The position numbers and the translations under genes were made by a program. From Ophelia neglecta (taxonomy: Eukaryota), in the NCBI GenBank assembly GCA_965285935.1, contig OZ260663.1, positions 55,676,001 to 55,740,000 on the forward strand: a stretch of 64,000 nt of DNA, written 5' to 3'. Shown here one piece after another: positions 13,192 to 59,900 of this stretch (position 1 is the stretch's first letter; every line of letters begins with the position of its first letter). The notes under the pieces were generated by a model. That model saw nothing but the letters and a program-made list of their open reading frames with translations. It made no database searches and was not told the DNA's origin.

Positions 13192-13555
13192 CCCGGGGGG
13201 GGTACTCCCATTATCCGGCATACTGGGTATGTGCGGCCGAGAAGGGTCGTTTTTCCTCAAAACTTCCCTAAACCAAGGGTACCTTTTTGTTGATTTCTTC
13301 CCTAATAAAGGGTATGGTTTCTAGAAAAAAATTCATCCTGTCGGGCATGATTCTGAATTGCCTAGGGCAGTGAATAACCTGTATTCCATTCCACGAGGTT
13401 ACATGTATGTCATAACAAAGTGCCAAGTTTGAAGTCAAAATGTCCCTAAATCAAGGGTAGGTTTGAAGTCATAATGTCCCTAATTCAAGGGTAGGGTTTG
13501 CCAGGTACCAGCCGCACACCCCCACCCAAAAATAATGGGAGTACCCCCCCCCGGG
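13192..13555. mobile_element. MITE with 8-bp target-site duplication
   Basis: TIRs CCCGGGGGGGGTACTCCCATTAT / ATAATGGGAGTACCCCCCCCCGGG; flanking direct repeat ATATAAAG at 13184-13191 and 13556-13563; internal ~34-bp tandem duplication near 13427-13495. Confidence 0.9.
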
Positions 13556-13795: not shown

Positions 13796-13950
13796 TGACG
13801 GTGTTTATTTACAGCATCCTGGTTCTTCACATCAGTAACCAATCAGCGGATCGCTGAAAACATATTGACGAATCAGCAGCCTGTATCAGGCGAACTCCGC
13901 GAAGCCATATTATATAGAGCAGACTCACATGGCGCATCAGAAGATCAACA
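13796..13950 (+). promoter_or_regulatory. Putative core promoter of the FBXO25/32 gene (canonical exon 1)
   Basis: Forkhead-type TTATTTAC 13805-13812, AACCAATCAGC near 13838, TATATAGA near 13910, local CpG enrichment, 60-215 bp before ATG 14011. Confidence 0.45.
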
Positions 13951-14010: not shown

Positions 14011-17000
14011 ATGCCGTTTCTGGGACAAGACTGGAGGTCCCCCGGAGAGCAATGGGTGAGAACCACCGAGGGCTGGGAACGTCTGAAACTATGGAGGTTT
14101 AAATTATTGGAAAGTCTCAACGCTAACGTAATAGCTAGGTGAGTAAAACGTATAATTTATGTTTGTAGAATCAACATGGCGCAGCTTGCGTAGTTCGTAA
14201 ATAAATGGATATTTGACAGAACCTGAATGCCTGAATGTATGCCATGTCTAAATCTTAGGACGAATGCAATCTTGCAAAGAGTTCTTTTAATTGTTACGAA
14301 TTAACCACGCGCACTTGAATCTATCCTAGATAGCGCGTGGAATTGACCCACACTAAGTAGAGATCTAAATGCGTGCAATGTGAGGGATTTTCTAGTTATT
14401 ATCAGAGTGGTAAACAAACCCACGTGGAAAAATTAACTGTCAAAATCTTTTTGCCATGTCTTTGACATAAGAAGCTCCCATAAGCAGATTTTAAGTTATT
14501 CAGTTTTTAAATGTAAAATGATTATCTGTAACGATTGTCTGTGAAACTAGCATTATGCATACCCAAACATTTGGTAGAGTAGACGATATAAATAGCTCAT
14601 AGATACTCGTGACATTACTGCCAACCCAGCAACCCGGATAAATAATCAATGAGCAATAATGTTCCAGCAACTATGGCTTTCGATTGAAGTATCCATTGGC
14701 AAGTCATATTGAAATATTTTCACAGGATTTTGGAACCAGTGATTTAGCCAGATATTGATTATATTTTTACTGTAATTGTTTCTACAGTGGAAGTGATTTC
14801 TAGCACAATTAGTCTAGCATGCTAATTTATATCTAGTCAGTTACACATATAATACACACTTTTAGTGTAAATGCAAGTATAGTTCATTATGAATAACAGC
14901 TAGATGTAGATTGTCATACATCAAACAAATTCAGGAAAAAAAATGATCTCATTTAATATTAATATTAATATTAATATTATTAATTAAGTATTAGAACACA
15001 CATCGTCTTTATATCATTGTATTTATTACAAAATAAAAATAAATTTACATAAATATTAGCATATACATGCATTGATAATGCAAGTAATGAATGTAGTCAG
15101 AAGATAAAATCTAGAAATTATATTTAAATAGATAGGACCATTTTTAATATCAAACATACAAGCAAGTCAGTGAAAGCAAAAATTTAATCAATACTGCCAG
15201 TATAAAGGCTACAAACGCTGGATCTGTCAATTAGCAACATGGTTCATTCATATAAATTTCATATATTTAATTCATATAAGACATACAGTGTAACCTTTAT
15301 AATAAGGTCAGTCAAAGAACAGGAAAAAACTTTAGGTGACCTTAGTAGGCAGGTCAGTTAACACAGGCTTAAATGGATATCAGGGTATTATTCAGTGACC
15401 TTAGTGGGCACTGGGCAGGTGACCTTATTATAAAGGTGACCACAAACACAGGTTTCACTGAACAGTGAAACCTGGCTTAAAAACCACCTCTATTTTCAGA
15501 CCACCTCAGTGTCAATTCAGGCCACTAATTAATATGAAGCCCCTAATGTAAACTCCAAAGTAAAATAACCCATGTAAAGAGACCACCTCTATTATCAGAC
15601 TAGTATTATCTATTACCTTGGGTGGTCTTAATTCACAGGTTTCACTGTATACCTTTTGTCTCATTGTGTCTAAAGCTATGCAAGTGTTGTCTGCCATATT
15701 CAATGGATGGAAAGGGGTTATGCTTTGTAAATAATGAAAAGGTCATTACACAGCGCAGTTCAAAGGAAAACAATTACCAATTGGAATACATGACATTACA
15801 TCTCATCAGGATATTAAACACTAATTGCAAATTTACCAGAAATAATTATGGCTGATCACAATTCATAAGAATTACCCATGCACCTCTGCACAAAGAACTA
15901 GATTTGGTATTGGACTATTGGGAATGTTATGAATTTATGATACATATTCAGTCCACTCTGAAGCAGGCTTCATCTCCTTAAGCACATGGCAGCAGGTTAA
16001 CCTGGAACAATTTAAATAGAGGGGTTATTGCAAATATATAATAAAAAAAAACATAATAAAGAATGCCATAAGTTGAGCATGATTGGCCGAGTACTTTTCC
16101 AGATTTTTGTTTATAGGTTAACATTTACAATACAGAATCTTCAGTATTTTCTGCTCAAATATATTAATAGATAAGAGTTCAGACTCTGCAACCTGCTTTC
16201 ATTTCAGTGATCTTCAAGTTGTCAGTGTTGCCAGTATATCTAATTTTATTTGCCAGAACATTATTGTATCCCACCACATGGCACTCATCACTTACTAACA
16301 CATATGTATGATCATATATCTTTCCAATGAGGTAAATTTATTTTGTTGACAAAAGTAGTGTTGCTTTGTGCTGTTGCCATTTTATGACAATCAGGATGCA
16401 CTCTGCATGATATAACTGAGAACACAAAGAAATCACACCAACTACACTACCAAATTTATTGAATTGAAAGGATGCCAGTTTGCTATGAGTCAGTGAGCGT
16501 ATATATCATGCAAGAGATGTTCCCAGAGCAGCAGTCCCTGGTGCTTGTCTGGAGGACCTCTACGTGCTAAGTCACTGGGGAAAACAAAGACCTTCTGATT
16601 TCAAGGGCCAATATTCTCCAAGCATGAGGTTTTCCAAGTTTTATCTCAATCGCATAGGTGGCCAGATAACTCTTTGTGTTTTATAACATAACCTAGGTGT
16701 TCTTTTTATTACTGTTTGAGGACAAAGACCCAACACTGTAATGTAAAGTAGGGTTAACAGCTAGAAGAGATACACTGAAGATTTTTACAATGACTTATTA
16801 AATTTCATTGACTTATTGAAGGTTGTAATATGGCAATGTTGCCTGATCTTGCTTCCTATAACCATGCATTAAATGTATTTGCCATTTCATTCATTAATTC
16901 AAATTTCATGCAGTGTTACAAGTAGCAAAATAGCTATTAACATGATCAGGATTACACCAATCAGAAATACAAGAGTACATATATTAATTTTACAATAGAG

Positions 17001-20000
17001 TTTACCCTGCCTGAAATATATTGTTAGATGAAGAAAATGTATATAATTTAGTTTTTTCCATAGTCAACTTAGTAAGTTATTAGTATGTCCTATAAATAAT
17101 ACAGCTATATACACATTTCAGTTCCTGTTCTAAATATACAAAACTTGTGGTAAATAGAGGGGACATGTGACATTTCATATTTCTAGACCAAAATAATGTA
17201 TCATACATATTAATTCCCATAATTATTTTTTATATTCTTTTTGTTTCTATCGGTGCAAATGGTTTAGATCAGCAATGATGCATTATCAATGCATAAAAGC
17301 TGCTCTTGGCAACTTGCAAGGTTGATATGCCAGGTATAACCTGATTGATGAACCTAGGAAGCTGAGTCACATCCTAACTGTACTTGACAAAGAAAGGTTT
17401 GAAGGTGCAGATAAATCTGATTAACCAGAGCCACCTTTGCTTTGATAGAAAACAGACAAGAATTTGAAGAAGCTATGTTAACTTATGATTAATATATAAT
17501 GCCAGCTAGGGATCCCTGGCTTTCAGACTGAGACCCGGGCTTTGCTACATAAAACAAACATACAATGAACTTCTCACTTGGAAAACATAAGTTAAGACTT
17601 GAAAAGGCAAACATAAATATAAACAAAATGTTAAACTCTACTATCCACCAGTTACTAAGTTCATGTAGGTTGTGTTAGAGTGTTACTGTCCTGTGGATCC
17701 CACTTTGTGTAGTACGTATAATCTTTGGTCACATGCCAATTCTTGGGTTTCCCTGGAAGTTCTAGGCAGATATCACCAGTTTATCCCAGTTCAAGGAAGT
17801 CCAGAGACATGCACAAGGCCAATGAAACTGCGTAGAATCTCTGGCTGCAGACCTAGTGATGTCAATTGGGATAACACGGTATCATATGACACAAAGGAAA
17901 TACTAGGCTAGCTCTCACATAGAGGGGCAATATATACTAGGTATATACTTGGTAATATACTAGGTATATACTTCAGTCATGATAGTTCCATTGAGCAAAA
18001 CTTTTATATTATGTTAGTCTCATGGCAGAACTAATGGCAGCATCATACCAGGATCTAGCTGGCTGAAATCTTAATGTTTTACTTCCATGCTAAGTTTCCT
18101 GGTTAAAAAGTCCCATGCTTGTGCATTTCAGCAAACCTAAGATTAAAACTACATTTCATAGTGTTTGAAGTCTTCAAGATGCACTGAACACATGTTCAAA
18201 GTTGAAATGTAGGCCAATCTTTGGGGCAAGTGTATTACACAGAGGCTGAAGTTTACAAAAACACTGCCAGTAGGCCTAATATAAGGGTGTCTGTACTTAC
18301 GTAAACTACACATAACATACAATACCTACCTATAAAATGTGATTTGATTATTTCTGAAGCAGAAAGCTAATAATGACAGGGGATTGTGTCAAAAGGCAAG
18401 GAATGCTGTAAACCTATGTATAGTTGAATCCATTAGTGATTGCTCATTTTAATACTGAGATACATTGGTGGACGTCACTTACTTACTTACTTGCCGCAAT
18501 AGCCTTAAAGTGGCACATACATTTTATCGCCATTTAATTTTGTGATGGCTCCTTGGATAAGTCCCAAAACAAAAGGCTTGCCAATATTTTTTTTAACGGT
18601 ATGACACTGTCAATAACTTGTCCCAGTGAAAAGCTGTGACTCTACAGGTGACATAATAGTAATTATGTGAGCGCCCTGTTATTCTAGGAGTTGTTTAAAA
18701 ATGTGGGTAAAAAGGATTATGGACTTATTTGATTGTTAATTTGTGTTTCAGCTGTGCCATGTTATACTGTCTGTATCACACTGACTTGGGCCATTTTGTT
18801 AGCAAATTTTGTGTAACATAAAACAGCTTAATACATGTATATGGTCATAGTAACTCGTGCTTATGCCAGTAGTTCATGATCAATGGCTAAATTTGGAAAA
18901 ATAATTAAGCAAAAATTCCCTGTTTTGCAGGTTACACACTGTTTGCTAATAACCGAATGTATCAAATCTAACAAACAGTTCTTGGAGCAGTTGGCAATGG
19001 CTTTCATCTCTATTAAAGTCATTTATATCTGTCTGAGACAGTAGAGCTTGGCAATAGCCAGTCGTCCATAAATCACTTAAAACAGTCTGTATTGTTCTCT
19101 AGAGTCATTAAGTCATTGTGCAAGTTACATTTGGTAGTCACGTTTCTTTGGCTCAAAATTGATCTTTGAACTTAAAGACTATTTTCCCAGTGATTCTCCA
19201 AAGTTAAGTATAATATATACTACTAGTCATCATAGTCAGATAGATAGTCTCCATATATGGAGGTGTGCACATACTATGTACATGAACTTGTGACATGGCA
19301 GGTAAAATTAACCTGCAGGTGGCCGAGTGACTCATTCTACGGTACATTGGTTTAAGAGAACGTCCAACCAAATCGAAGACAACATTAAATCACTTGACCA
19401 TATATAGTGGCATTTCAAAATAACACTAAAATTATTCCATCTCATCCAATCAAATGTTATAAATAGTCATTTCTTCCTAGAGAGACACATTCAAATCAAA
19501 ATCTGAGCAAACGCACACAAGTGTAGCATGATAATTCTGCCCATACGTATATAGCATTTCTCTGAGGAATTCACCAAAATGGCAGAATCTTCTATGTCAG
19601 TTGTTATTTCAAATAGGCCGGCATGGAAAAAAACACCTGAAGGATGGATCAAAGAAAAAGACCACTGTCCATCCACTTGTCCACCACCTGGACCTTCATG
19701 TGAAGGTTCTACTTCCTGTATTGAAGCGTCCTAAGCAGGACCAAGTGTATCAAAGCCAACACAAGACAGTTATGCAATGAATAGTGACTGTGTAAGCCTA
19801 CATATAAATAATAGAAAAGATTTAGAAATCAGTGGAGATCAGCTCAAAACAGAGATTGAACCAATGGCTAACATTAATGTTTGTGAGATAAAGAAGAAAA
19901 TTCTACAGAAATTTAGTGCAATGTCAAGAAGAGAACCCTCATCTCAACCAGCCAGGAAAAAGATGAAAGTGGAAGAAACTGACAAAAGAGCCATCAGTGA

Positions 20001-23000
20001 TAAATCAGTCCTGCATCTTATAGGCTCATTTCAATCGTCTCAAGAATCTACAACCCCTGACACAGCTTTACATGGAAATTTGCAGTTCTTACAAACAGCT
20101 GGCACATGTAATGAATATGTCAAAAGAGGAACTATGTGGATTAAAAAGCGATATTCAAGTAACCATTATGATGAAGAGTTTCAATTTTTATCTGGAGAAG
20201 AAAGGTATGTCTGAATTGCAAGTACTAATTATATGCCTCCAAAGGTGCTTAACAAACAGGAAGACAGCTCTTATATTTTTGTTTCATTTTTTAGCAATTG
20301 GATACAACTGAGAGAAGATGTGATAAAAAGTCAGATATTAAGCTTCATTAATTAATGTAAAAGTATCACATTTAAAGGGAGAGACAGCCTAGAATTATGA
20401 TAACCAGATTTGGTGTATCAGACTGCGAGTACCGGTACACTTCTTGTAGGGTCTTATGTTCATGATGTTTGAGGTGTGATCATAGGTAGGCTACTGTTTG
20501 TGTACTGTTTTCTGTCATAAATTCTGCAGTATTTAGGCACACAGTAGAGGCCCGATTTTCCGATTTTCCGTACGTCTTGGGGGGGGGGGGGGGTGTTACA
20601 GTAAATTTGTTCTGATAGTCTGATGTTTTAATGATTGGTCATGTGGATTTTACACATATTATGTAGATTTGTACTTTTTTTGTAAATAGATTGTTTTTAG
20701 CAATAATACAAACAATACATAGTCATATTACCTGTACTCCCCAGTAATATTCATATAGACGTGTATCAGTCAATATATTTGATTGGCCAGTATTGTGTAC
20801 TTTTGTACTAATATCCTAATCGCTATCTTAGGGCAAATTTTTGTAACGTTGCTATAGTTTAAATTGTTTAATACAAAAGTTTTGCACTAACAAAAAAATT
20901 TTGTTTATAATTTCTGAAATAATCAGCTTGCGCAGCTGCCATAATATAAAGATTGGCTGTGTCCTATGACTTCATTCAAATTGAATGGAAAAAATGTTTA
21001 CACGCAATTAAGTTACAATTGTTTATAATGCTATGCACAAGATATACAGATTTAAAAGGCACTATTTAGTGACTATGAAGTGTCTGCATTATTGCTTTAT
21101 ATATAAGCCCAATACTATAAGATAGCTTAATTAAGCAGTGACTACATTTCAAGTGTATTTGGTTATACATGTAATGTAAATAGAAACACAGACTAGAGGT
21201 TATTCAGATATTTAAATGTGAGTCATAGATATTTTGGGTCTGTTGTCGATGTGGACTAGGGTTTTTTCCATCCACCATGAGGCCACACTTGCATGAACAT
21301 ATTAGGAAAACTTGGCCATCCCATGACTCTGCTCCTAACATAAGGGTTGTATGAACACTTGAACAGCTTGCTTAAATATTTATAAACTATATCAAATAAT
21401 AATGTGAATTATATACAATATAAAAACTACATGTACTTCCCCTTAGATTTATTACAGGGAAATCTACAAGTAAAGGTATCTAGACATTGTCACAATGTAT
21501 CATACAATCACTTACCTGGTGCAAGTTACAGGTGGTATGGTCACATTTCATTGGCACAAAATTGCCCTTTGAACTTAAGACTATTTTCCAAGTGAATGCC
21601 ATATTAACAAAGTGATTAAACTCCTAGGCAACCTGATTCATTTTCACTATCATAGAAGAATAAATTCATACTCCCAGATGCTAAGAATAAACTTTATCCC
21701 TGTTTTGGTTATGATCCATCAGATCTGTACACAGTTAGACAGCATTGAGCTAACTTGTAACCATATAACGCCTGTATGGATTAAGCATGTGACCTCTGTA
21801 CTCTGGTTACCGTAGCATGCTAAGCCTTTGGTTGGTTCATTATGAAAGCCATATATGGCAAGTACATGTACATTTTCCTTATATGGAACTTACAGCCATG
21901 AGCAAATAATCAATATTGATTTGAATATTCACAGGCAGCGCAGTAAGTTTGAGAAGACATCATTTCTGTGGTCAACATTTTGAGCAACGATAACCACTGA
22001 AAATAACTAATAACAGCTAGTACATACTTGGCCAAAGATATTGGGATAACCGAGGAGGGTTGTCAACTTCATATACTGGATTGAATCGTTAACCAAACTG
22101 GCAACAACCACGATGTCAACTTACGACTGGCAAGATACAGGAGATATGTGGATAAAAAGCCAACACGGCTGGGTCAGGAGACAAGATTACAGCTTCCCAG
22201 GAATGGAATCTTTGATTGACACAACTTCTGTCCGTATGGTTGAGCACAGCTTGGACAACAATCCAATGGACAGTAAGACTGACAGTAAGGATGAATTGTG
22301 CGAAAAAGAAGAATCCGTCAATTTGCCTGAAAAGCAATATGTTGATTTATCTCCAAACTATGTATTTAGTAACACTGAACAACCGGTAGGTCACAATTCT
22401 AAATCTGACAATGTGTCATCAGATCATGTTTCAATTGCAAGTGCAAGTATGTTTGATGAAAATAACTTGCTACAATGTGATACAGATGGCAATCTTGACA
22501 TGCCAGTCTGTGAGTCCTCGGAGGCAACAGGAATGATCTCAGCAGCAATGCACGTAGATGATAAGAGCTATGACCTCAACATGCTCAATGACCAAATAGC
22601 AGCCTTTTCTAACTGGGACTGGCATGCATCAGTGGATGATGGGAACACACCTATTAACATCAGTCAAAATGAATGTGTTGCCAATTCAAAGTTGGAATTG
22701 AATTTGGAAATACCAGGGGTAAAAAATGAGGGAAATGAAGAAGCTGTAGGGGCCATTTCACAACTGCATTGTATGGAAATTGAACAAGACGGGGATAAAG
22801 TGCCAAGCAACCAAATAAAGGAGACAAAGACTTGTCAATCATCTCAGGATAGCTACTTGAACTTAAAAACTTCATATGAACATGATAACCCATACGCTCT
22901 GCGTGATCTTCCAATGCTACCAAGTCTAGGCAATGAGTATGTGAAAGAAGGGACCACATGGGTTAAAAAATCTGAAATGTTTAAGCAGAGTTTTGAAGAT

Positions 23001-26000
23001 TTGCCAAAGGAAGAAAGGTTAGGTTATTTGTTAGGACAATGAACCTGGTCATAAACATGTAGTAAAAGAAGGGTACATATATGTTCTTATTTTGATAACA
23101 TTTAATAATTGAGTATGATATCTTTGCAGACTGCTGAAGATTGCCAGCTACGAGGAAATGATGAGACATAAGGAGCTCGGTAAATGTTCCCAACCCCACG
23201 TGATAATCACGAAAGGCATCACCAAAGAGGTACACACCTTTCATCATGGTTTTAGTGTAATCAAATTTAATGTGTTATATATGCTCTTAATTATCAAAGT
23301 TTTATTGTATTGGAGGATAAACTATTCTGCTTGCTTATAAAAATAAGTAACACAAAGATATACATGATGCTTCATACTTATTTTGTAGCAAAAAGTGGTA
23401 ATAAGTACTGCAGAGGCTCTAACTCGCCTGGACTTGACTGGGGCGGCCAAAGATACCAGGAGATTTAATTATGTCTGCAAGGTAAGGCACAGGCATCCAT
23501 CTGCTTTATGGAAGATCATTGGTCTTACTGAGTACTGGTAACTGCATGGGCATAAAATTATATACTAACTGAACAAGCCCACCAGTCTATTATTGTCTGG
23601 TTACTCATCTTTGATATTGTACCATGTAAGAATTAAAAGTCATGACAATACCTACATACAGTCAAAATTCATTACACCTTTTAGTTAGTGCCATTTCAGT
23701 TGAGTTTATTGTAACTTTTTTAAACCTTTTTTTACTTCAGCTCCTGGAACACTTTATCACCAATAAACTGTCAAGCATGAGTGGAACTGCACAGAAAATG
23801 TTGTTCAATGGCCTCAAAGAAGTCTTAAATCAGGGTAAATTGAATTAAGCCTGTATATTATTATACATTGTGCAAAATGATAACTGCTCTTTTCTACATT
23901 AGCATAATATGACATTCATGTAAACTTTACTATGGATTGGGGAAAGTAGGAATCTCACTATGCACAATGAATCAAATGACTTGTATTATTTTTCGTGTGC
24001 CTTTGCAACTTCTTGTACATGCTGTTCTCATTAATCTTGACAGCCTTAAGGTGGGCATCAGACCATATTACCAGTACATACATGTGTCTGTTCAACTTGC
24101 TCAGGTTCAAGATCAGTATTCGTCCCCTATGACTAATTTAAAAAATAATAACCACAGATTTTGTTATAATACACCACAGACCTCATATAATGGGTATCAG
24201 CATGCACTATCACGGGTAGGTGGAAGATAAAAGTCTGAGTGAGCAAAACATCTACTTTAAAAAAGGCTCACACCCTCATCTTTAATTATGTTCAAACACT
24301 CCGAGAATATTTCAAGAAACTGGAATCACATATTAAATTTGTTTCACTTTATTCCCCATGACTAAATATTCTCATCTACACATGTATTGCTATTGACTCC
24401 ACCAAATAGTTCTAGGAACTCTGGCTCATATGTTCAGGTGCCAAGTCAGTCAGTGACAGCTGTTGATACATAGATACATGTACATGTAATGGTGTAATGT
24501 CTGTATGATGGGCTGTGACTAACTCACTTCCTCACTTTACTCACTTAGCCATGTCAGTCGGTATTTTTGTGAGTTTGTGATGCAATGTGGAATGTCCAAA
24601 GTAAAACATATACCGGTACTGGGCAATATTGCACCATTACAAAGAATAATTGCTACAACAGCTTGGACTATTCTGGTTGATGTGAACTGGACAATTTCAT
24701 GAATTCAGGTCCCATCCTGTCAACCCTATTTTTTCCCATACTGTGTCTGTCTTATTATGGTGCAATGCTGGCTCAATTACAGCCAAAATACCTCATGACT
24801 CAAGTCAATGCGTTGCATGTGTCCCAATTATAACCCAGTTTAATTTGCAGTGAACTTTCTTCCCACGTTTTACTACACCTGTAAATTTAATACTGCTTTT
24901 TCTATTATACACAACAGTGATTTCTACCAAAAACAACATCCATATCATGAAGGATCTATTGAAGGAGGCAAGAAATGCTTTGAAGCAGTCCCAATATGAC
25001 CATGTTGGCAGCTCTAGTCTCTGGGCTAGACACCTGGAAACAGTGGACAGGCTGCAGAATACCCTCAACAGTTATGAAATTGAACAGGTACATGAATAAA
25101 TAAATCATTATTCAGAACATATTAAAACTTTCACATATCTTGCAATGAAATCTTAAAAGTAAAAAAGGATTTCAGAGAATATGGCAGCAAAGGTATACCA
25201 AGCATGTGTCACAAGTTTTATTTTGTTTCAGAGAGAGGAAGATGGAAAAGTAAAGATATCAGATCTTCCAGATGAGTGCATTCATCAGATATTGTACCGA
25301 CTGACAGATCATAGGGATCTTGTCAATGCAGGTCTGACAGAGAGCCGAACTTTCGATTTGTCCGAGGCCAACATCTTGTGGCGCCAACTGTGTTTGTTCC
25401 ATTTTACCAACAAACAGTGGTGTGCTGTGTTGAAAAAAGGGGAGAGCATGGAGACATTTGGATGGAAAAATCTATACACCAAACTAGTCAGGTGGGGTCA
25501 GATACATGTATATCAGTGAATGAACAATAAACTACATGGCTTTCTTCCTTTTTAGTCTTTCTTACATGTATGGAGGCCCTTCTAATAGGTACATGTATGG
25601 GTCACATTTTTTGTACCATGGCTTTTATGTTCCTGTTTTGGTATGGTGTCAGAGGCATCTGTAGCACATAACCATCAGCCATCAATGGGGTCCCCCCCCC
25701 CACGACTAAATGGCTTGCTAACAATACAGTTTTTTTAAATGCCTAGAAAAGAATAGAATTTAAACCTTATTTGATTTGATCCAGTTTCCGGGAGCAGTTA
25801 CCAAGACAAGACAACACTCAAGTCAATCACAGGGGCCTCTATACGTGTACATGTTTTATTCTATTGTAACAGCTCTATATTGAGTTACCGGTATGTCCAT
25901 CTTATTACTATTTAGGAGGTATGGACAGCGTGATGTCTACAGTGAAATGCTACACCTCTGCAGGCATTGCAATGCACTTTTCTGGAATGTAAGTACATTT

Positions 26001-26469
26001 ACTATTATTAACTCATTCAATACTACAGCCCCCTACCCAGGGCAGATACCCCTTTAGTTGCAGATATTCAAAGTTGAAGGGGTTAATGTGTGCGAGTCTG
26101 TCAATTCAACATCCCTTTCAACAGTCTTCAGCTTAACATGATCACAGGGTTATAGTTGCTTACTGTATACCATACTAAAGCAATATCTTTTGAGATTACT
26201 TACACTATTGGCATGGCATCTTCAGCTGCCTTAAGATATATTTAGTCCTAAAATTAAGCATATGTGCTCAAAGGTGAATTTTTAATTTAGAAGCCTTTTG
26301 CTGGGTTTCTTATACTTATATACTTACAAATAATAATATGCAAAATATATGTAGTGGTATTTAATCTTTTCCTATTCAGCTACATGGGCATCCTTGTCTT
26401 GTCCCTGACATGAAGCCAGAGTCAATCCCAATCAGTCCAGAAATGTGTGTTGTCCTGTTCACAGCCTGA
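14011..26469 (+). CDS. FBXO32: F-box only protein of the FBXO25/FBXO32 (atrogin-1/MAFbx) family, canonical isoform
   Basis: Exons 14011-14138 ([24 protein letters not shown]), 23130-23229, 23389-23481 ([19 protein letters not shown]), 23741-23834 (SGTAQK), 24918-25087, 25232-25491 (F-box [16 protein letters not shown]...[10 protein letters not shown]), 25916-25988 ([10 protein letters not shown]), 26380-26469 (GHPC). Probably the single pro-orthologue of vertebrate FBXO25 and FBXO32. Confidence 0.95.
15286..15647. mobile_element. Two adjacent Tc1/mariner-like MITEs (15286-15460 and 15463-15647)
   Basis: TA|CAGTGTAACCT...AGGTTTCACTG AA CAGTGAAACCTG...CAGGTTTCACTG|TA. Confidence 0.7.
19251..19260. 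promoter_or_regulatory. CArG box (SRF site) upstream of alternative exon A
   Basis: CCATATATGG = CC(A/T)6GG. Nearby: CCAAT 19446-19450 and MEF2/TATA-like TTATAAATAG 19457-19466. Confidence 0.5.
19579..20204 (+). CDS. Alternative first coding exon A of FBXO25/32, with one in-frame TAA at 19732-19734
   Basis: MAESS...[11 protein letters not shown]...EAS*AGP...MNSD...[13 protein letters not shown]...SGEE-AG|GTATGT; 208 codons + 2 nt, phase 2 like exon 1, joins exon 2 at 23130 in frame. Confidence 0.7.
21849..21886. promoter_or_regulatory. Paired CArG boxes upstream of alternative exon B
   Basis: CCATATATGG 21849-21858 and CCTTATATGG 21877-21886. Confidence 0.55.
22113..23017 (+). CDS. Alternative first coding exon B of FBXO25/32
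   Basis: Open for 301 codons + 2 nt: [23 protein letters not shown]...[18 protein letters not shown]...PKEE-AG|GTTAGG; phase-2 donor, 112-nt intron to exon 2. Confidence 0.85.
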
Positions 26470-31580: not shown

Positions 31581-34500
31581 ATGGTAGGTTATGTGGATTT
31601 TTCGTTGTAAAACCAATAAACGCAGAATGGAACAAACATTGCTTCAAGGCAGATTCCCTCTTTCAACAATACCCTTATCATTTCGTGTCCATATTTTGCC
31701 GGTTCCGTCGTCCACAGTGCATAAATATACACGTCAGGTATACTGGTCCTTGTTTGTGAGCCCAGGTGGTGTGTGTGTGGGGGGGGGGGGGGGTGGTGGG
31801 TGGGTGGGGGGGGTGGTGGTGGTGGAGTGACAACTAGCCCCCCCCCTCCTCCTTAAGGACTCAGAAACGAGTGCCTGTTGACTTATAGACTTGTAGAATG
31901 ATCATGCACTAGCTGTTTAGACATAGAAGGTTTTGTTTGACATTTCACTCTGTAGGTCTACTTGTTAGGCCTATTGATATGCATAATAAAAAACATAGTA
32001 TACTGCCAAATCCTAGTTATCGCACACTGTAAACCGCCACTAAAATTCGAGCTGGTTGGTGTATGACCAGCTGATGACAGCTCTCTCAAATGCAAGTTGT
32101 TGACAGCACTGCTGTCATGTCTGTGTTGTCAGCTCAAGTTTATGACAGATATATATATATACATTAGCCAGGGATAATTCTGCTACGCGGCATTGCGGCA
32201 TTGCCACATTCATTCTAAAAATCCCCCATTCCCCAGCCCATGGGTGTGGGAAAAATGTGCATCGCCTTCTGACGGTAAGACCATGTTAAACGACTGGGCG
32301 AAGTAGCACTCGGGCCTCAAATGTGTCCCGTAGTCCTGAAATGTGTCGATACCAATACCCGAGAATACCCGCCACTGTAAACATGTACACGGCGTGCACA
32401 GAAGAGGATTTCCGGGTTTTTCCCAAGCCGGGTTTTGTTAGCGATCTCTAATGGGACACTACTTCCTTAGTACTACCGCTGCCACCGCTGTTCTCACTTT
32501 GCATATCTGATGTCAGCATTTCTTAAAGTGTGCCACCAAAAATGTGTGATCTTTCAACATTTTATTTATTCCAACAATTTTATTAACAAACGGCATATTG
32601 TAGACCATTAGAAGTTTTATGATTGAAAATGTATCCCCCATTGCCTTGAAAAATGCCCCATTGAAAAAAAAAAGTCAGCATATCTATTAACATAAGACTT
32701 GTGACTTCTAGCTAATGGCATATTCATTCTCATTTACAAGTTGGGTCCTTTGAATCAATTTAACCACCAGGGTTTGTTGTGCTAGCTATCACCTGTCTGT
32801 GAAACCAATGTGTGGTTTGAACACTATGTCTACTAAATAGTTAGACCAATCTACTAAAGTTTATCAATTTATGCATTGGGACTTAGGTCTACTAAAAGTC
32901 AATTAATAAAATGCCCAACTGTTCTCAACCAAAAAGTTAGTTTCAAAGGCTGTATCACATATAAAACTTGATTGTCAGACCTCCCACTTAATGACCAATG
33001 ACTATATTGATGTGTTCCATTTATTAAATGTTTAGCAATATTACTGCTTATAATTTCCTTGGATGACACAAGCCTGTGATTTGACTTAGAAATAGAAAGG
33101 CAGCCATTCCATTTATTACGAAATGTATGTAGAAAGGCAGCCATTCCATGTATTGCGAAATATATTTATTTCCTCAAATGGCATTCTGCCAATAACACCA
33201 AAGCATGCATGCACCATGGACCTGTTCAGATGTATTAAGAAATACCCTGAACAACATTACACAATACCAGCCTTATACATGAATATATGGGAGGAAGATT
33301 GGTTAAGCCATCACATTAATCATGACTTGCTTACCTCAAACAGTGACCACTTGTGTGAACACCTATTTTCCTAGCCACTATAACTATTTTAGTGTGTGGA
33401 AAGCTGCATTGGGATATGTGGTATGATTTGAAATCATCTGTAACAACATTATTATGATAATTTTCTCTCATATTATATCATTTGTTTAGTAATTAACCTT
33501 TGTCTGTTTTGTTCATTTTCAGAAGCCATTAATGTTGCACGGACATGAGCGTTCCATAACGCAGATCAAGTACAATAGGGAAGGGGACTTGCTTTTCTCT
33601 TGTGCAAAAGACAGCCAACCAAATGTGTGGTTCTCACTGAATGGAGAGAGACTGGGCTCTTTTAGAGGACATGGAGGTGCCTGCTGGTGCATTGATGTAG
33701 ATTGTATCCTTTCGGTCAAATATGAGATATTACTCCCAACCACTGTTATAGAAGATAGGATAGCATAAGCTTTATGTTAAAATGTACAATGTGTTCAGTA
33801 TCCAATGATGAATTGTTTTGTTATGCTCATTTTCTTAACTAAAACTCAGGGCAAACATCCAAGGTGATGACTGGCTCAGCTGATAACACTAGTAGAATAT
33901 GGGACTGCCAAACAGGTATAAAAAGGTTTACATGGTGTCATGCCAACTTTCCCAATCAATATTTTATAATAATTTGTTTTAGGAAAGCATGTCAAAATTT
34001 TTCCATTCTCTTTTAGCAGGGTGGGGGCGTATCAGTCTCAGCCCCCCCCCCCCCCCCCTTTCCCCATCTGAACCCTTTCTTGTTTAAATTTAGAATAATA
34101 ATAATGATTTCAGTCGCCCCTCCCCACCCCCTGCCCCCCAATTAAAAAAGATCATAGTTTTGCAAGTTTTATGTGGTAAAGTTGGTTTAGTTTCTTGGAA
34201 ATAATTCAAAAGGCTATTAAACTTACACTAAGATTACTAATAATCATTTTTTGGGTCTCTTTCAATAAAGGGGTACAGCTATATGAGCTTCCCACCAAAT
34301 CTGCGGTCAGGACATGTGGCTTTTCCTTCTGCGGCAACTTAGCTATGCTCAGCACAGACAAAACAATGGGACAAAACTGTGACCTCAATGTGTTTGACTT
34401 GAGGGATTCTTCACAAATGAGTAAGTAAACAAAATAACTGAATGACGAGAACTTCTGTCAATTAGTTGGACATATTTCCAGAGAGCAATTTAGTCTCCAG

Positions 34501-37136
34501 CTCTTTTTTATGAGGTCTGTAGATCTAAATTGATACTTCAGTGAAGCAAATGACGACAGGTCGTAAACTAATTTTAGCCAATGGGCTTGAGAGTTCTTGT
34601 TAAACTCAGGGAAAATATTCTGTGTATATCTCAAAACGCACTGTACTGTAATGTGTCCAGTAGATGAGGTTTTATTGTGTGTATGTATGGATTAGTTTAA
34701 CCTTCTGCTTTCCAATACAAATTAGATGATTGGAAAGAATTATTTGAATCCATAAGGTTGATTCTTTATCATGCCTTTCCTGGTTGAGTGTTAACTGAGA
34801 CAGATTATTCTTTTGTAACAGGGGATAATGAGCCCATGCTGTCCTTACCTGTGCCTAAGCACAAAGTAACGGCTGCTGTTTGGGGTCCACTTGATCAGAC
34901 CATTATATCAGGCCATGAAAATGGAGACATTAATTTGTGGGACATGAAGGTAAGCTTGATTGTGCTTGTTAATTATTATATTCGGCACATAACACTAAAT
35001 TATTTTAAGTATGAGTATTTAAATACAGATGCTTGGATTGCAAGGTTGAATAAATGATTAAGTTGCAACAAAATAAAATAATTGTTTATATTTTTCATTT
35101 TCAGAGCACAGATCTTTTAAATCGGTCCTTGGATCATGCCAAACAGATAAATGACCTACAGCTGTCTAAAGATGGCACAATGCTGATTTCAGCGTCCAAG
35201 GATAACACCGCCAAGCTGTTTGACTCGGGGTCTCTGGATCTCCAGAAGACATACAAGACAGAAAGACCTGTCAACTCAGCTGCCATGTCTCCTTTGATGC
35301 CTCATGTGAGTTTCATCTTCATTACATCTACTTAAAACAGTGGTGCTGATCAAAATTAGGAAGATTACATAGATTCAGGCAAATATAGTCTGCTTCTGGT
35401 ACAGAATCCCACTTGAGATCAAGCAATATAGCAAGGTCAATGATTTAAAAGAAAACCTGTCTTTTAAGGACGGTGTAAATGTTGAGCACATTTTCCCTAT
35501 CCATAAGCATCTTTAAACATATGAGTACAGGGATTTTTTTACCTGTGGGTCCCGCGTCTTTGGCACATGTAAAACGCCAAAAGACGCATTGTGTTATCCG
35601 CAGTGCGTCCCTTAGGAAGCACTGTCTTATTTTCATGAGCGCGCTTGCCGACTATGTTCAACGTAACCATCCTAAATTTAGTGCACAGTTTGCTATTATG
35701 ACTGAAGTAGCGCTCCACACTGCAGACTTGAAATCGTGTCAAGGCCGCATTCAGCCACTGTCACCGCCAGGCGGCAGCTCATTTCAACAGGGCCGCCTGG
35801 GAGACACATGTAATGAGGTCGACTAGTGAGCGAAAATTGGGAAGCGTTCAGTTGCCGAGACACGGATTACGGCTTTATACTCCTGATAGTGAACTTGCCC
35901 CGATGCCTCCAAATAAAAGTCTAATGCTCCTAAAGGGCCAGATACTAATAACTTTAGGCTTCAGTCAATCCAATGAGGTGTGGTACAAACATTTTTTTCA
36001 ACAGGGTATTTAGTAATAAAGGTGTTATTTTACGATATTGTTGCTTTTTATTTTGATGCACTAATAATTGTCCGGGACTCATTGCAAGTCCCCCAGGACT
36101 CTTTGATTCAAATTCAGTGAGTCCCAGGGACTCATTGTACCTGAATTGTAAAAAACTCTCTGTGAGTAAATGAGTACGGAGTTTTATTTGTTTGACATGT
36201 GGGGACATCACCACAGCTTTTTAATGCATCAATGTAAGAAAATGAAATACACTGAGAAAATATTTATGAGAAGTAATTTTCGTGTAGGTTTTAGGTATAC
36301 TTGGAATTTTATTGAAGTAACTCTTGATTCAATATACCTAAGGTGTTTGGTTTAGCTATTAAGGCTTAAGTAATATTGAACTAACTAATATTGGTATGCC
36401 TACTTTTAGTAGTTTAAGTTATGATTAGCAGGAAATAATCCTGTAACAGTGACATTGTTCACAAGGTTTTAAATTCTTGTTTTTTTTTTGCAATAAATCA
36501 CTTGTAAAGACTATGTAATTAGCTTATAAATGCTATCTCTACCAAACATCACAGGTGGTAATGGGAGGTGGACAGGATGCCATGGATGTGACCACCACCT
36601 CCACCAGGATAGGCAAGTTTGATGCCAGATTCTACCACCTGGTCTTCGAGGAGGAGTTTGGCCGTGTGAAAGGACACTTTGGACCCATCAACAGTGTGGC
36701 ATTCCACCCAGATGGAAAATCGTTAGTATAGTTTGTTTAATAAGATATGTGACAGGATGTAAATTTATTTTTAATTTGTACTAAATACAACGTATCGTGG
36801 GATGAGGGAAATACTGTTCCAGTTTAACTTCATATGCTATAGCTGATAGAACAGTATTGTACTGCTCTCTATGTATCCTAGTACCATTATACCTATGTCT
36901 TCTGGTTATATTATTTTTTGGGCTTATATTGGAACAGCATTGGTGTCTTTTTTCTTGTTTTGAAATATTTTCAATGTACATATCATTATTATATATAGTA
37001 GTATTTCTAAGCTAAGATTTGGCTTTAGATTCAGTTTACTGCGTGTGATTTCAGATATTCCAGTGGAGGAGAGGACGGCTATGTGAGAGTTCACCAATTT
37101 GACCCACAGTACTTTGATTTTGACTTTGAGTATTAG
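31581..37136 (+). CDS. EIF3I: Eukaryotic translation initiation factor 3 subunit I (WD40)
   Basis: Exons 31581-31583 (ATG|GTAGGT), 33523-33703, 33850-33915, 34271-34420, 34822-34949, 35105-35305, 36555-36721, 37055-37136. [31 protein letters not shown]...[38 protein letters not shown]. The ATG-only first exon is the least certain part. Confidence 0.97.
33704..33849 (+). other. U12-type (minor spliceosome) GT-AG intron
   Basis: Donor GTATCCTTTC; branch point TTCTTAAC 33832-33839 close to the CAG acceptor; no polypyrimidine tract; splicing restores T|GG (Trp). Confidence 0.93.
35528..36162. mobile_element. Non-autonomous DNA transposon in EIF3I intron
   Basis: Imperfect TIR CAGGGATTTTTTTAC / GTAAAAAACTCTCTG; flanked by TGAGTA at 35522-35527 and 36163-36168; GGGACTC subterminal repeats; CpG-rich interior. 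Confidence 0.7.
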
Positions 37137-51964: not shown

Positions 51965-53954
51965 AAATTTATAGTGAATACCTGAAATAATATATGCTGT
52001 ATTTATATATATATCCATATGTATAATAAAGTGCAAAATGGTTTCATAACTAAACAGGATTTAGGAAGACATTATTTATTGCTGAAATAACTTTTGATTC
52101 AATTAAAATTAGCACTGTGCTGATAATTCAAGCTGACACAGCCATCCGCCTCTAGACAATAACTTTGTTGATTTCCTGACAGATCTACGGCAAATTTCCT
52201 TGGTTGGCGGTTGATATAACTGGGTATAGATTGTTTGTATTGTCATGGCAACAAGTGCCTCGTTTGCATGACATTGCTATCAGAAGAGATGGCTAAATAG
52301 GTTCACTTGGCACAACTTGGTCTATTTGACTTTGACCTGTAGATATTTGGCTCTTTGGGGAGTATTGTGTTGGAAGATTCAATATCATTGTATAATGATG
52401 GTATTTGGGATGAATTCTGGCTAACCGACCTTGATTGGAAGTGACACAGTATATTTTGATTGATCTTTATTCTTTATCGGAAACATTGTTGAGTCAGAAC
52501 ATGGGTAATGTGCAACAGATTATGTTTAAGAATATGTTTTATATTTTGTTGAACTTTGAACATTGTTTTTGTAAAAGTGTCATGTTTGTTTATCAACAAG
52601 TATTGGGTTTCAGTTTAAAAAGCACATAATTTTAACAGGAATAGATATTTATTTCAAATCTTACTTGTGGTTCTGACGTTGAATTTGCACATAATTAATA
52701 ATGGATCATCAGCTACTATCAACACAGAGCACCAGGTACTCCGAAAAAAAAGAATATCTATACAAACAACAGAAAGTAAATTCTAAGCTAGAAAACGAGT
52801 GAGTGAATTGACTATATACAAATGTACGTGGAGATTACTTGAAATGAGGATAGTTTTCCATATTGAGCCACAGTAAATCATGAATGTTGCAAAATTAAAA
52901 AGCCACAATTAAATGTCAGCTGTTTCTTGATAATTTGATGTTTAACAGTATTATCAATTATCCCCTATTAAAGAAATGAGTGTGTGACCAGGGTGTGAAG
53001 GTAGACGAGTGCACTTGCATAGACTGAAATGCCAGAAGGAATTGGCTGGCTAGCTAAACTGCTGACCTACCTGTGGCTCACCTTGAATTCGACTGTGAAT
53101 GTCTTGTTTAAAACAAGACATCACAAAAAGACTCCTTTCGAAAAGGCTTATTATCAAACAAACTGTACTTTGTGTGACAGGTTTGGCTGAGGTTAGTATT
53201 TATAGGGTCTACATGATATCACCCTAATTGTGAATTTTTATGAGAATTTGACCTTGAGAGTCTCCTTGAGGATCAGTCAGACATGAGCCCAGTTGGTCAT
53301 TCTGTTGGTTATTCTGAGAAAATCTCAGTAATTGAATCAGATGTTACATGTACATGCACATGTGGGTAGTTAAATTGTTTTTTTTTAAATGTTTGGTTAA
53401 AATATAACATGAAAAATGAAGCTACATGTATATGTTTATTTGCTGGCTCTCTTTAATTAGAAAAGAAGTATATAATTTGTTAGAAAAGGAAAGAGTCAGC
53501 TGGGTATCTTTTGGGTGTTTTGAATTTGTACTTGATCCACATTAACAAGTTCAAAAAGTCTTTCAAGCTTATTATTGTAGTCTTCATTCTAAGAGATGAA
53601 GCTTTAAGGGTCGTAATTGATTTAAAACATGACATTAAATACAATTCATTATATAAAAAAAAAAGAATATTAAGGGTAGGTGCCAGTAATTAATTGCAAA
53701 TCAGCTTAGCTCTGCCTTATTTAAAATGAATTTAAATGCAGAAATGGCAGATTCTGTTGCAATAAGTAGTGTCACACATGCCTTATAAATTGGTGAATAC
53801 CATCTGTCCAATTGAATGATCCGTTTATACATGTTTGCATGGTGTTGTTTGATTAAGTAAAATACTTTCAATCTGTTGTAGAAAGTATAAAGAAAATAAT
53901 GCTCTGCTAATTTTATTTTCAGAATTAAACCACCTAAATACATTACAACCGAAC

Positions 53955-56900
53955 ATGGACCAGTCTGATGCCTCATCAATGGAGGGTGCAACACCAGGGC
54001 ATGCCAAGGCCAGCTCCTTCCCTGGTACTGGACAGCGCAGTTATAATGCTCTGTATGAAAGACCTGGAACCAAAGTCTGCTACTTCTACAAAGATGGGGA
54101 CGTGACATTTCCTGGTATCAAGTTGGCGGTGAACCCTCGACATTACCATGATGTGGACATCCTTAAATCTGAACTGACTAAAAAAGTGCAGGGTCTGCCA
54201 TTTGGCTGCCGAGCCATATACACCCCTGCTGGGCGCCACAGGGTCGACTCAATGGATAAGCTAGAGAATGATGGCAAGTATGTGTGTTCCACTCAGCGTC
54301 TTCGTGCTAAGGGAGTTGACGTCATGCGTGCCCAGCATGCCAACAAGGCCTGGCGCTCTGGAAGTCGTGCCCCTAGCGGTCGTAGGGCCTACAGCCTCAG
54401 CCTACGGGAGTCGCAAGTGGAAACCATTCATCAGACACCCAAACGAAATGCATGGGGGCCTAACTCAGATTCTAGTGAGAAAAAACCTTTATACAACGCA
54501 AGGGCACCCAAAAAGATTACTGTGTATAAAAATGGTGACACATCACAACGCCACGTTCTGCTGCTGAACAGGAAGACAGCTCAAACATTTGAGATGGTCC
54601 TTGATGATCTCAGCGGGATGTTCCAGATGCCTGTCAGACGGATGTACACAATGGAAGGAAAACCAGTAAGTCTAGCACATTCTCTATGAAATCTTGTTAT
54701 TGAAGATTAGTTGCAGTTATAGAGCTGTTGCAGAAAAGTTAGTTGCAGTATTTTTTTATGAAAATGGCTACTTGGACCTAAGCATCAAAGATGAGTGTAC
54801 ATTTAAATTTGTGTACTATTTATTATACTTGAAAGCAAGTGTTATCTATGTGTAGATGAATTTTCATAATTACCCAGTTTGGGAAACAGTAGTCATTGAT
54901 TAATTTTCTTCTTATAAGGTAAGAGGGTTGTCGGGGGTATTCAATGGCCCAGATACCTACATTGTTACGGGTGGAGACCGTTTCAAGCCTTTGACCGCCT
55001 CTTCAGAACCGCCTCCCACCAAGAGGAAATTCCAGCAGAATGATAGCGTACATGCCAGGCTTAGACAAAAAAGAGAGAAACTTTCCAAGACGAGTGAGTT
55101 GGTTTATTTTAAGTCCTAGCTGATGTGTCTTCAATGTGTCTTCTCTGTTTGCTTTCCCTGTTGTGTTTAAAAATGTATAAAATTATACATGTAGATACAA
55201 GCCCATATTAGCAAAATATTGAAAATAACAATATACCAGGGTATAATTTTCCTTTTATTGTTACTATAAACCTAAATTTCTCTGGCTATGCTACCAGACA
55301 CTGCATGACATTTCAGAGCAAGTGTTCCTGCTCACTCCGCACCCACCTCCTAAAAGACAGTTCCCTCGCGGAGCGCCCCCTGCCACCAAATACAAAGTCA
55401 GGCAAAGATCAGGTAGAGAGATGTGTGCCACTCACTTCCTGTCTATACTAATATAAACTAAACAAGAAACCCCGACGACATTGATCGTGTTGATTACAAT
55501 GTACTTTATCAATCCAGCTGATCCTGCCTAGTTCACTTGTTTGGATAATGTAACAAAGCCCACTAATGTCACTGGTTTTTGCTTGCTGCTCTGAAATAAC
55601 TGCTTACAAATTAGAAAAATATTGTGATTATATGGATGTGAAAAATATAAGGCCATATGGAAGAACATTATGGCTTAAAAGCCTTATGACTATCATTATA
55701 AACATACATGTATGCAATTGAGAGAAATTATTACTTCCTGGAAATACTTTTGAGCTGAATGGAGAGTTTAATTTTGTTGAGTTATTATGTTATAACATTT
55801 GAAAGGAATGAAGGCTTGAAAATAGATAGCTACACACAACCTCAAGCCATGGTTTTTCTTTTCTTTAGCCACATTTAAAAATTGCATATGTTTATACAAG
55901 TACACAACAAACCACAGGTAAAAAATTCTGTTTGGCCATGGTCTACTGCACCTTGTGTGTCCATCTAAACATGACTCATGTGAAGGACTTTAACTAGGAT
56001 TTGTAGGAGATATTAAAGCTTTATTTTTTCTCCATTTTTTCCTATTTACCTTTTTGTTCTAGAAATAATTTTTCATAGCAACAAGTGTTCATGATATTAT
56101 TGGAATGGAAATAAAAGGTCAAAGAATATCAAAATTGATTACAAGAATTAGCAAACAAATATATTCTTCTTTAATATTATCAAGCCTAGAAATGTGTGAC
56201 CACATGTGAAATGCAAACAAAATTTAATTGGTGTGGTAGGCTTCCAGAAACTATGTTAAATTATATGAGTTTCAAGTTGGATCAATGTTTCAAGGCCATT
56301 TGCACATGTATTATTAAATGTGTTAGTTAAGGTGACTCAATGGCAGGGCAGTTCAAATATTCATGTACTTGTACATGTATGTAATGTATAGTTGATGATT
56401 TTGTTGCCACTTTTAAAGCCCAGCAAACTCCTGCTCCATTTTTATCGGAATTCTGATCTGAATTAACCTTTCCTATATCTGTAATTACCTGAAGTTTCTG
56501 AAGCCACAAAGGAATTTATTTATGACCATGAAACATACATGCATGTCCATATTGGCTTCTGATTGATAGATAAGCCAATAAGCCAATACATGTGGCTGAA
56601 ATTTTTTATAGTTATCTGCTTTGCAGCAAAATCACCATTTTGTCTAGTTATTGATCCCACTTTCCTCACTTGCTTGATCTCCTCAATCTGAGCTGCAATC
56701 TGAGCTGTCTCACTCAGCCCAGCACAAAGGCTAATCAATGTAAACTTAGTTGGTTTACACTGATTCAATGATGCATTTAATTTTTCATCCGTGCATGCTA
56801 AAACTCAATTACCGGTACTCTCCTGACTTCTTCACATTCATCTTGATTCATTTCTCGGATATTCTAGCACTTGTAGTTTTATTCTCATCGATTAACATTG

Positions 56901-59900
56901 TCTGCCAAATTGTAGAAGCTTGATGAGTTTTTATTGCTGAGCAGTCTAGAGCATGTAATTGAAATAATCAATCTATCTTAAACGACATTTAAATTTGTAG
57001 TACTACAACAAACTAATCTCAAAAAATTCAGCAAATGTGTTTAAGTCAGACTACACATACATGAAGGATTCACAAAGCTGTTACTGGCACCCTGCAACAG
57101 ATATAATCATGTAACGAGTTATTTGCCAGTGTTTTTCCCTGCTTTGTTATGGAGAAATGTTAATGTATAACTGGGGTATTTTAAACCTAATTTACGGTAG
57201 GAACAGACATTGAATTGGGTGGCAGTGTGATGGCTCGCATGATCTTTTAAGTCGTTTTAATTGTTGAGGGAGAAAGAATGAAACATGTTGCTGTACATGT
57301 AATTTTTTGTCCATTGTTACAGACATCATGTTAGTTCAATCTGTCACCTCTGATATGAAATTAAGATATCCTTTTTGAGTATTTTATCTGAACCTTTGTC
57401 ATTACAGGAGGCAAGTGGACAGTATGGGTGACCACAAATGAGCTACCTTCAGGGGGAACTCAAGCCCAGGTGACAATCACTGTTTATGGGCACAAGGGAA
57501 ACACGGGACCCCTGCCACTCGGCTTCGCAGACGGCGAAACCTTCCAGACTGGAAACATTGACGAGTTTGAGGTACTGACTCCTGCTAAAATTGTCAACCT
57601 TCCAAATTGTTAGCTTGTCTTCATTAATATTTTAGTTTTCTCCTCACCCTTTCCACCTGTAGTCTATTCTTGAATAGAGTGCTTATAGCTCTAACAGTTT
57701 AATAATATATATGTATGTAGTTCTAAATCCAAGTTCATTGATTGATTTAGTCTCAGTGCAAAGGACTTTTTTATATTGAGCATTAAACTTTGTTTCTTTT
57801 CCAGTGCAGTAATTAATTACTTTATATTTATTCCTTTTAATCTCTTGTCATGATTGTTGATTTCTACACTACCCCATTTATAGAATTAATAGAGAATACA
57901 ATCTACATGATGAAGCTTTTTTTCTGATATTTAGCTCTTTATAAAAAAAAGTATGTATCTTGTATTTCCTGACAGGGAGGCAATATAATAATGGCCACAA
58001 GCCAGGTACATGTTTTTCCACAAAACCAGACTAATTGAATTGATATTTTAATCACAGTCTATCAACTTATTAATGTCATTGAGTTTTTACCAAGCTAACA
58101 CTAGGGTTACGTCTTTGCTCTATTTTGTTTGCCTCCATATGAATGAAAAATTCACTAGACTTTTTTTTACATTCTAAAAGAGCTTGTTGCATAATGTTAA
58201 TTGTTGTGTTACATTATGTATTTTCTTGGAATACAAGTAAATTAAATGTCATTTATACTTTTCAAATGGCACTTTGGAAGTATCCACTTCTCTGCATGTT
58301 GGGTCACAATGTAAAAAAGTGGTCAAATGAAGCATTTCACTTTGTACCACAATTAACACCAATTTAACACTGATTTGAAATCTTTGAATCCCAGTAAATT
58401 ATGATTTGACCCGAATTGACCTAGTCAAAGTAGCAGCAGTGATCTACCATGTCAGGGCAGGGTGTTGATAGACAGTATGCAGCTACTTTGATAAGTGGAC
58501 AATTCAGCCCAGGATTTTTTGTTAGTTTAAAAGATCATGGCATGCAGTGCCGCATTAACAACATATAAATTGGTGATTGGGTATCCACAGCATTTGTCAC
58601 GGAAAATAAAATAACACTGCACAAAGAATGTTCCTACCAAGTTTACTAGTTGATATTTTGGGATTATATATATAATATGGAATGTGATATATTTCTATTT
58701 TGGGACAGTAGAATTAGACTAACATTATTATTACATTGATTAAACATAAATTATTGCTTCTACTTTTAGCACTATAGTCACCATTTATACCTGGAAACTC
58801 ATTGGTTCTTTGTTTGTGTCAACATTTAGAAAGTTAAGATGGGTTAAACTGAGTTCTAATTACCATATCATATGTGTATCACAATGTTATTTTCTATTAC
58901 ACCAATCAGATTAATGTGGGAAACATTGGTGAGATATTCAAGATCCGCGTAGCCCATGACAACACGGGCGAGTTCCCAGGATGGTTCTGTGATGAGGTAA
59001 TTATTTGTTTTATTAGATCAGTATTTATTATTCATTTTGATCATATCACCAGTCATGAACAGGAGCAAAAAAATGAGTTCACTATAAAATGCCCCTTCAC
59101 TATGTTTGGTAAAAGGTTTATGGAAATAAGGTGCCACAAAAATTTCATAGAGCATTAGCATCTGTTGGCACCTGGGATTTATCACCAAAATTAACATGGT
59201 GGGAAAATATTGCTTCCAGAGAAAAGTTTGATATCATTGGACATTTCATGGTTTAGAATATTTGTTTGTGGTATTGCTAGGTGAGAATGAAAGACAAGGA
59301 CACAGAGGAGGAGCTGCTGTTTAGATGTGGACGCTGGCTGTCCAGAGACGAGGATGATCACGAGATCTGCAGGGAGCTGCCCGTCATGAGACCAAACGAA
59401 CAAGTCCTACCAGGTACAGTAGATACATTGAAACAATTAAGAGTATAACTGGGTGAGGGATCAGTAAGTTTTTCAAAATAGTACATTTTTTGGGTGGATG
59501 CACATCATGTCTATCTACTGGGGTATACACTGTATTATATACATGTATATGGGTCCTCAGCCCAAGCGACTCTTGTTTTAGGTGAAGTCAATGGCATTTA
59601 AAAGGTCATTACCACATGTATGAAATAAATACTGATATTCAAATAAATTGGCTCATGTGTGACAATACATATTATGGTATGCTCCTTCCTTGTCCAGTAT
59701 TGAAGTATGAAGTGACAGTGCACACTGGTGATCTGTGGAACGCTGGCACAGAGGCCAATGTCTACATGACAGTGTATGGAGAGAAGGGAGACACAGGGGT
59801 CAGGCAACTCTACAAGTCTAACTCCCCCCAAAAATTCCTCATGGGACAAGTTAGTGAAATCAGTCTTTGCCAAATATCTCGCACATGACCATACTGTTAG

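Follow-up and report, generated by a model that had tools for sequence, protein, structure and literature searches.

We analyzed a 64,000-nucleotide stretch of the Ophelia neglecta genome (assembly GCA_965285935.1, contig OZ260663.1, positions 55,676,001 to 55,740,000 of the forward strand). The whole stretch is referred to as the window, and all coordinates are positions within it. Its plus strand carries a single-copy F-box gene of the FBXO25/32, or atrogin, type. Atrogin is a ubiquitin ligase adaptor of muscle wasting. The first intron of the gene spans 9 kb and contains two units, designated A and B, each with a long open reading frame (ORF). A preliminary description of this DNA had proposed that A and B are alternative first exons that give one F-box protein swappable N termini.

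The canonical gene and its relatives

Exon 1 (14011-14138, plus strand) has 42 codons plus 2 bases and ends in a phase 2 donor, AG/GTGAGT (a slash marks the splice site). It begins with the N-terminal signature of the family, MPFLGQDW..., from Met1 at 14011, and the orthologous exon 1 of two relatives (L006 and L009, introduced below) begins likewise. We take this Trp signature to be that of the vertebrate FBXO25/32 family. Exon 1 had no Pfam match. Upstream of it, a CCAAT at 13839 and a TATATA at 13911 (-172 and -100 relative to the ATG) make the plus-strand stretch from 13839 to 13918 a putative promoter, as judged by direct reading and motif positions. Just upstream of this stretch, 24-nt inverted repeats (13192-13214 and 13532-13555) surround ~360 nt with a 35-nt tandem duplication, an arrangement that looks like a small transposon.

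The constant part of the gene starts with exon 2 (23130-23229), which is entered in phase 2 through the acceptor ttgcag/ and left in phase 0. Splice sites and phases then delimit exon 3 (23389-23481), exon 4 (23741-23834), exon 5 (24918-25087), exon 6 (25232-25491), exon 7 (25916-25988), and the last exon, exon 8 (about 26380-26469), all on the plus strand. Splice sites were judged by eye and not with a trained splice model, and all searches were done exon by exon, without joined spliced proteins. The canonical product has ~335 residues, with the F-box in its C-terminal half. Exon 6 encodes it, matching the F-box-like family PF12937 at 25232-25489 with 31.2 bits against a cutoff of 24.3. A protein with the JGI name "F-box protein 25/32" (P0006) shares 53% identity with this exon along its full 86 residues (E value of 3e-35). 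We found no paralogue of the F-box exon elsewhere in the O. neglecta genome, and a search of the structure atlas ESM Atlas with the same exon returned generic F-box clusters only.

To find relatives, we used a profile of the F-box exon, which recovered short ORF products on eukaryotic contigs of metagenome assemblies. The informative loci are L006/L007, where the gene is whole, and L009, where the contig ends after exon 7. These are distant relatives, with 59 to 65% identity in the F-box exon. L006 and L009 have their exons in the same order as the window gene, their exon 1 shares 71% identity with that of the window gene and has the same Arg codon split in phase 2, and the C-terminal residues of exon 2 are conserved. 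The likeness of the window gene to FBXO25/32 comprises the N-terminal Trp signature, an F-box in exon 6, and an exon order and split Arg codon that recur in two relatives.

Two further loci differ in structure. A distant atrogin-like gene from a JGI metagenome (L004/L005) is uninformative on A and B. Its F-box exon is split by an intron (L005:1305-1475 and L004), and of the motif only the W..GW half survives in its divergent N-terminal exon. In another relative (L012:881-1334), the 5' end of the F-box exon occurs three times in tandem, at 881-940, at 1013-1057 (with a stop), and in the full exon at 1077-1334. Therefore, duplication at the level of exons occurs elsewhere in this gene family too.

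Units A and B within the first intron

Unit B (22113-23017, plus strand) is a candidate first exon of 301 codons plus 2 bases with a phase 2 donor, AG/GTTAGG. Joined to exon 2, it forms an AGA codon at the junction and stays in frame, and exon 1 does precisely the same. The open frame of B extends over 330 codons, compared with 98 ± 17 codons (maximum, 158) when the intron was dinucleotide shuffled 300 times (z of ~13.8), and neither strand of the window has a longer open frame. We searched B for tandem repeats as a cause of this length and found none. Chance is excluded as an explanation for the open frames. An in-frame stop at 22047 lies upstream of the B ATG, and the only phase 2 AG sites ahead of that ATG are in a purine-rich context.

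The first 41 residues of B are colinear with exon 1. They are followed by a linker (residues ~42-262) that is acidic and probably disordered and then, from residue ~268, by a second exon 1-like module. AlphaFold2 on ORF B alone gave a mean predicted local distance difference test (pLDDT) score of 32, which is unusable, and left the tether between the modules without a confident structure; as a hint, it drew each motif end as a hairpin plus a short helix. With phmmer, ORF B had no match among 1.84 billion representative proteins. A scan of metagenome contigs found no relative, and a search of the organism's own 762-Mb genome found no paralogue, so that B is single copy. No Pfam family matched it.

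Unit A (19579-20204, plus strand) is a candidate first exon of 208 codons plus 2 bases, and it ends in the phase 2 donor AG/GTATGT. It has an N-terminal W..GW motif, a linker, and a second exon 1-like module by the donor, and it too is without a Pfam family. In the assembly, a TAA at codon 52 (19732-19734) interrupts A; from 19735 the frame is open again, with its first ATG at 19777. Variation was read from contigs of three DNA-like sequencing runs, all of one sample that holds several haplotypes. Contigs from two of the three runs have an A for the T at 19732, which changes the codon to AAA (Lys). Therefore, TAA and AAA segregate as alleles. On the AAA allele the 208-codon frame is whole, and the open frame of A extends over 219 codons. 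An in-frame stop (19552) precedes the A ATG, and the sole ATG in the presumed leader of A (19528) is itself polymorphic, with A>G changing it to GTG in two of the three runs. Removal of the TAA within a mini-intron of 60 nt (19706-19765) is conceivable, but the signals for it are weak, and the existence of the AAA allele makes it unnecessary.

These readings bear out most of the structural claims of the preliminary description. Direct reading places exon 1 and the start of exon 2 where it had them, and both A and B end in phase 2 AG/GT donors that join exon 2 in frame. The Trp motifs are located as it had described, the in-frame stops at 19552 and 22047 are present, and A and B have no usable phase 2 acceptor, given the stops upstream and the purine-rich AG sites that are the only ones before B. 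Its claim of two long frames holds in full for B, which is open for 301 codons, whereas for A it fails in the assembly and holds on the AAA allele.

Several comparisons connect the units to exon 1 and to each other. In a pairwise BLASTP comparison of exon 1 with B (E value of 4e-8), residues 1-41 of B aligned colinearly with all 43 residues of exon 1, up to the final Arg. With a profile of canonical exon 1 from three species, ORF B was the best non-self frame among the 2948 in the window (E value of 0.0014), and the profile also touched the weaker second copy that adjoins the B donor. In an exon 1 search of the whole 762-Mb genome, the N terminus of B ranked first after exon 1 itself. A weak match on contig C2 is interrupted by a stop and is probably due to chance. 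The C-terminal modules of A and B match each other over 42 residues of A (E value of 8e-6), and their DNA can be aligned over 38 nt (20110-20147 and 22932-22969). The N-terminal motif of A fits the second half of the motif and is not significant alone (E value of 3.9 with the exon 1 profile). Written as a pattern post hoc, the motif occurs five times in the six-frame translation of the window, always in exon 1, A, or B, compared with 0.01 times in shuffles. There may be a sixth, decayed copy near 22617-22655, for which the signal is weak. The donors of exon 1, A, and B are all AG/GT in phase 2, and those of A and B stand in an identical eight-base context, GAAGAAAG/GT. By these comparisons, A and B are paralogues of exon 1, each arranged as module, linker, module, and donor, and the gene has five copies of the module.

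The sequences upstream of A and B also share features. A noncoding element that contains an E-box (CANNTG) is conserved between them, with one copy at 19118-19229 ahead of A and the other at 21519-21630 ahead of B. Identity between the copies is 86% in a core of 78 nt and 78% across 116 nt. They differ by 1- and 2-nt indels, and they are the only two in the whole genome. As an RNA, the element had no genuine match in Rfam and no fold that was stable or covarying. CArG boxes (CC-W6-GG) lie at 19251-19260, 328 nt upstream of the A ATG, and at 21849-21858 and 21877-21886, 264 and 236 nt upstream of the B ATG. The window has seven such boxes, which is the number expected by chance, and three of the seven are these ones, 236 to 328 nt before the two ATGs. 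Unit A is also preceded on the plus strand (19446-19465) by a putative promoter pair, a CCAAT at 19446 and TATAAATA at 19458, at -133 and -121 from its ATG. Unit B has, after its CArG boxes, a leader of 215 nt without an ATG, whereas the intron averages one ATG per 41 nt (P of ~0.005). The start codons of both units are in good context. From these signs, we infer that A and B may each have a promoter of their own.

Selection, variation, and competing readings

Taken together, the data suggest that A and B are probably lineage-specific alternative first exons, a reading to which we give a probability of roughly 55%. The preliminary description had called for a dN/dS comparison of the motif blocks, and the result is in line with it. 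Over 13 codons of the second module, a small block picked because it was alignable, A and B differ at a proportion of 0.80 of synonymous sites (pS), which is saturated, and at only 0.14 of nonsynonymous sites (pN), with the residues kept. Neutral sequence that had diverged this far should be full of stops. However, the 301 codons of B are free of stops, and the only stop in A is still polymorphic. Among the alleles sampled, the two module ends of B have no single nucleotide polymorphisms (SNPs). The sole indel in B is 6 nt long and in frame, and the four intronic indels are 8, 4, 2, and 1 nt long, which is weak evidence in the same direction. It had also been noted that matches to transposon proteins, or a lack of conservation in relatives, would count against the proposal. 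The units are not transposon ORFs, as B is single copy and has no database relatives and neither A nor B has a Pfam match. Conservation is divided, with exon 1 conserved and A and B absent in two distant relatives. Their absence there marks A, B, and the surrounding 9-kb intron as an innovation of the window's lineage.

A number of results weigh against the use of A and B as first exons. At L006/L007 and L009, there is a single exon 1, only ~0.9 kb separates it from exon 3, and these loci, including 6.2 kb upstream of exon 1 in L009, contained no second motif, no long frame like that of A or B, and no copy of the element. The assembly carries the nonsense allele of A. In the linker of B (codons 41-236), there are 15 SNPs, of which 12 are nonsynonymous, 3 are synonymous, and none creates a stop. 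This is a neutral mix (pN/pS of ~1), and the SNP density of 2.5% is eight times the 0.3% of the neighboring intron. One 53-nt contig (run X3; depth of 4, where the local depth is ~11) departs from ORF B after 22435 into 23 letters that are absent from the window, and this may be a heterozygous insertion or other structural variant inside B. The donor of B (GTTAGG) is weak, and the promoter-like motifs are short and were spotted after the fact. Finally, a search for sequencing runs that contain the stretch returned the three DNA-like runs of one sample and no RNA run, so it provides alleles but no junctions.

Some of these same results would fit a different history, in which A and B are copies of exon 1 that are now unused and decaying. 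They would perhaps have been functional until recently, and their frames and donors would be leftovers. The nonsense allele in A, the pN/pS of ~1 and high diversity of the B linker, the possible structural variant at 22435, the relatives that lack A and B, and a run search that yielded DNA-like runs only, and hence no sign of expression, are all on the side of decay. However, the synonymous sites of A and B are saturated, and yet B has acquired neither stops nor frameshifts and A has only its polymorphic stop. Decay also does not account well for the ATG-free leader that B retains or for the noncoding element conserved between the units. For these reasons, we think it unlikely that A and B are mere remnants.

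It is also improbable that A and B are ATG-bearing exons under a shared upstream promoter, used as mutually exclusive second exons behind a noncoding exon or partly as cassettes, and not first exons with promoters of their own. Both copies of the element end in a pyrimidine run followed by an AG (at ~19188 and ~21590), which could be a regulated acceptor flanked by conserved intronic sequence, and a pyrimidine-rich ...tttag lies 24 nt ahead of the exon 1 ATG. Inside B, there is an AAG acceptor near 22918 that is phase compatible with exon 1, but A has no matching internal phase 2 acceptor. Furthermore, stops would be met if exon 1 were spliced to an acceptor at the element, and the leader of B is free of ATGs as far as the CArG boxes, not as far as the element. 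A CCAAT/TATA pair at a normal distance precedes exon 1, with another before A.

Very improbable is a third possibility, that A and B are nested unspliced genes for F-box-less proteins of 211 and 309 residues that consist of Trp modules only and might compete for a partner of the ligase; their own start codons and promoter-like flanks and the stops soon past both donors (within 3 codons in A and 8 in B) would fit this, but it leaves unexplained the GAAGAAAG/GT context and the phase held in common with exon 1, and a B transcript would run into exon 2 anyway, as the stretch from the B stop to exon 2 lacks an AATAAA.

In the reading that we favor, exon 1 has been duplicated in tandem inside what is now the 9-kb intron 1. 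Each derived unit comprises, in order, the shared element and CArG boxes, a leader and ATG, a Trp module, a hydrophilic linker, and a second module with the phase 2 donor. If A and B are alternative first exons, three promoters would drive three first exons, all spliced to exon 2, and long isoforms of ~500 (A) and ~595 (B) residues would be made beside the canonical protein of ~335 residues. In the long forms, the N-terminal module would be kept beside the core of the protein, and a second copy would be added on a tether. The calculated isoelectric points of the tethers are 4.2 in B (acidic) and 7.9 in A (neutral to basic). Judged from their sequences, the isoforms would differ by an N-terminal extension, with one module or two, and not by replacement of the motif. 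The proposal of swappable N termini is therefore retained in part. Paralogous first-exon units are present, but each keeps the donor-side module and adds a second copy N terminal to it, so the module itself is not exchanged. That A and B retarget the ligase is pure inference. The full picture is of a variable-first-exon system with SRF-type CArG promoters, bivalent long isoforms, a fast-evolving disordered tether, and one unit that segregates as a natural knockout allele. We propose this only tentatively, as somewhat less likely than not to be right in all its parts.

Other features of the window stand apart from these readings. Within intron 1, each of the three runs has contigs that break or branch at 20552-20610, a stretch with a tandem repeat of 8 nt and 15 consecutive G; this is probably an intronic repeat boundary. 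The gene that follows the F-box gene downstream shows as a series of exon-sized frames on the plus strand (33493-36728), presumably encoding a WD40-repeat protein that resembles eIF3 subunit I. Farther downstream on the same strand (53853-64000) lies an open frame of 278 codons, and behind it many frames of exon size continue past the window's end. We take the first to encode doublecortin domains and the later ones PLAT/LH2 repeats.

Known systems and what the units may mean

Variable first exons joined to constant exons are known from UGT1A and the clustered protocadherins. The likeness consists of tandem paralogous 5' exons, each with its own ATG and donor and no acceptor, that face one first constant exon; in the window gene, a separate promoter for each of these exons is putative, and A and B are candidate exons. 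Unlike UGT1A and the protocadherins, the window gene has only three units, and the variable part is a short repeated module with a disordered linker and not a folded recognition domain. There is also a difference within the family. A single first exon of this type is present in vertebrate FBXO25/32 genes and in the two invertebrate relatives, whereas the window gene has three units and five module copies.

A full-text literature search found no description of isoforms or first exons of this kind in FBXO25/32. FBXO25 is stated to have several isoforms (PMC7948486). For FBXO32, the regions described are a leucine zipper, an LCD, a nuclear localization signal (NLS), the F-box, and a PDZ motif, with no role assigned to the extreme N terminus (PMC9641816).

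The extreme N terminus is nonetheless the most recognizable part of atrogin-type F-box proteins, and the multiplication of precisely this module suggests that it is an independent binding unit. The module appears to be under purifying selection while the tether drifts, and its copies may lie behind separate, possibly muscle-type promoters. If A and B prove to be unused, they would still be a clean example of exon duplication and exonization within an intron. If they are alternative first exons, the ligase would exist in monovalent and bivalent (or self-inhibited) forms, and the partner that the module binds could be sought with the long, short, and knockout forms that the gene would naturally provide.

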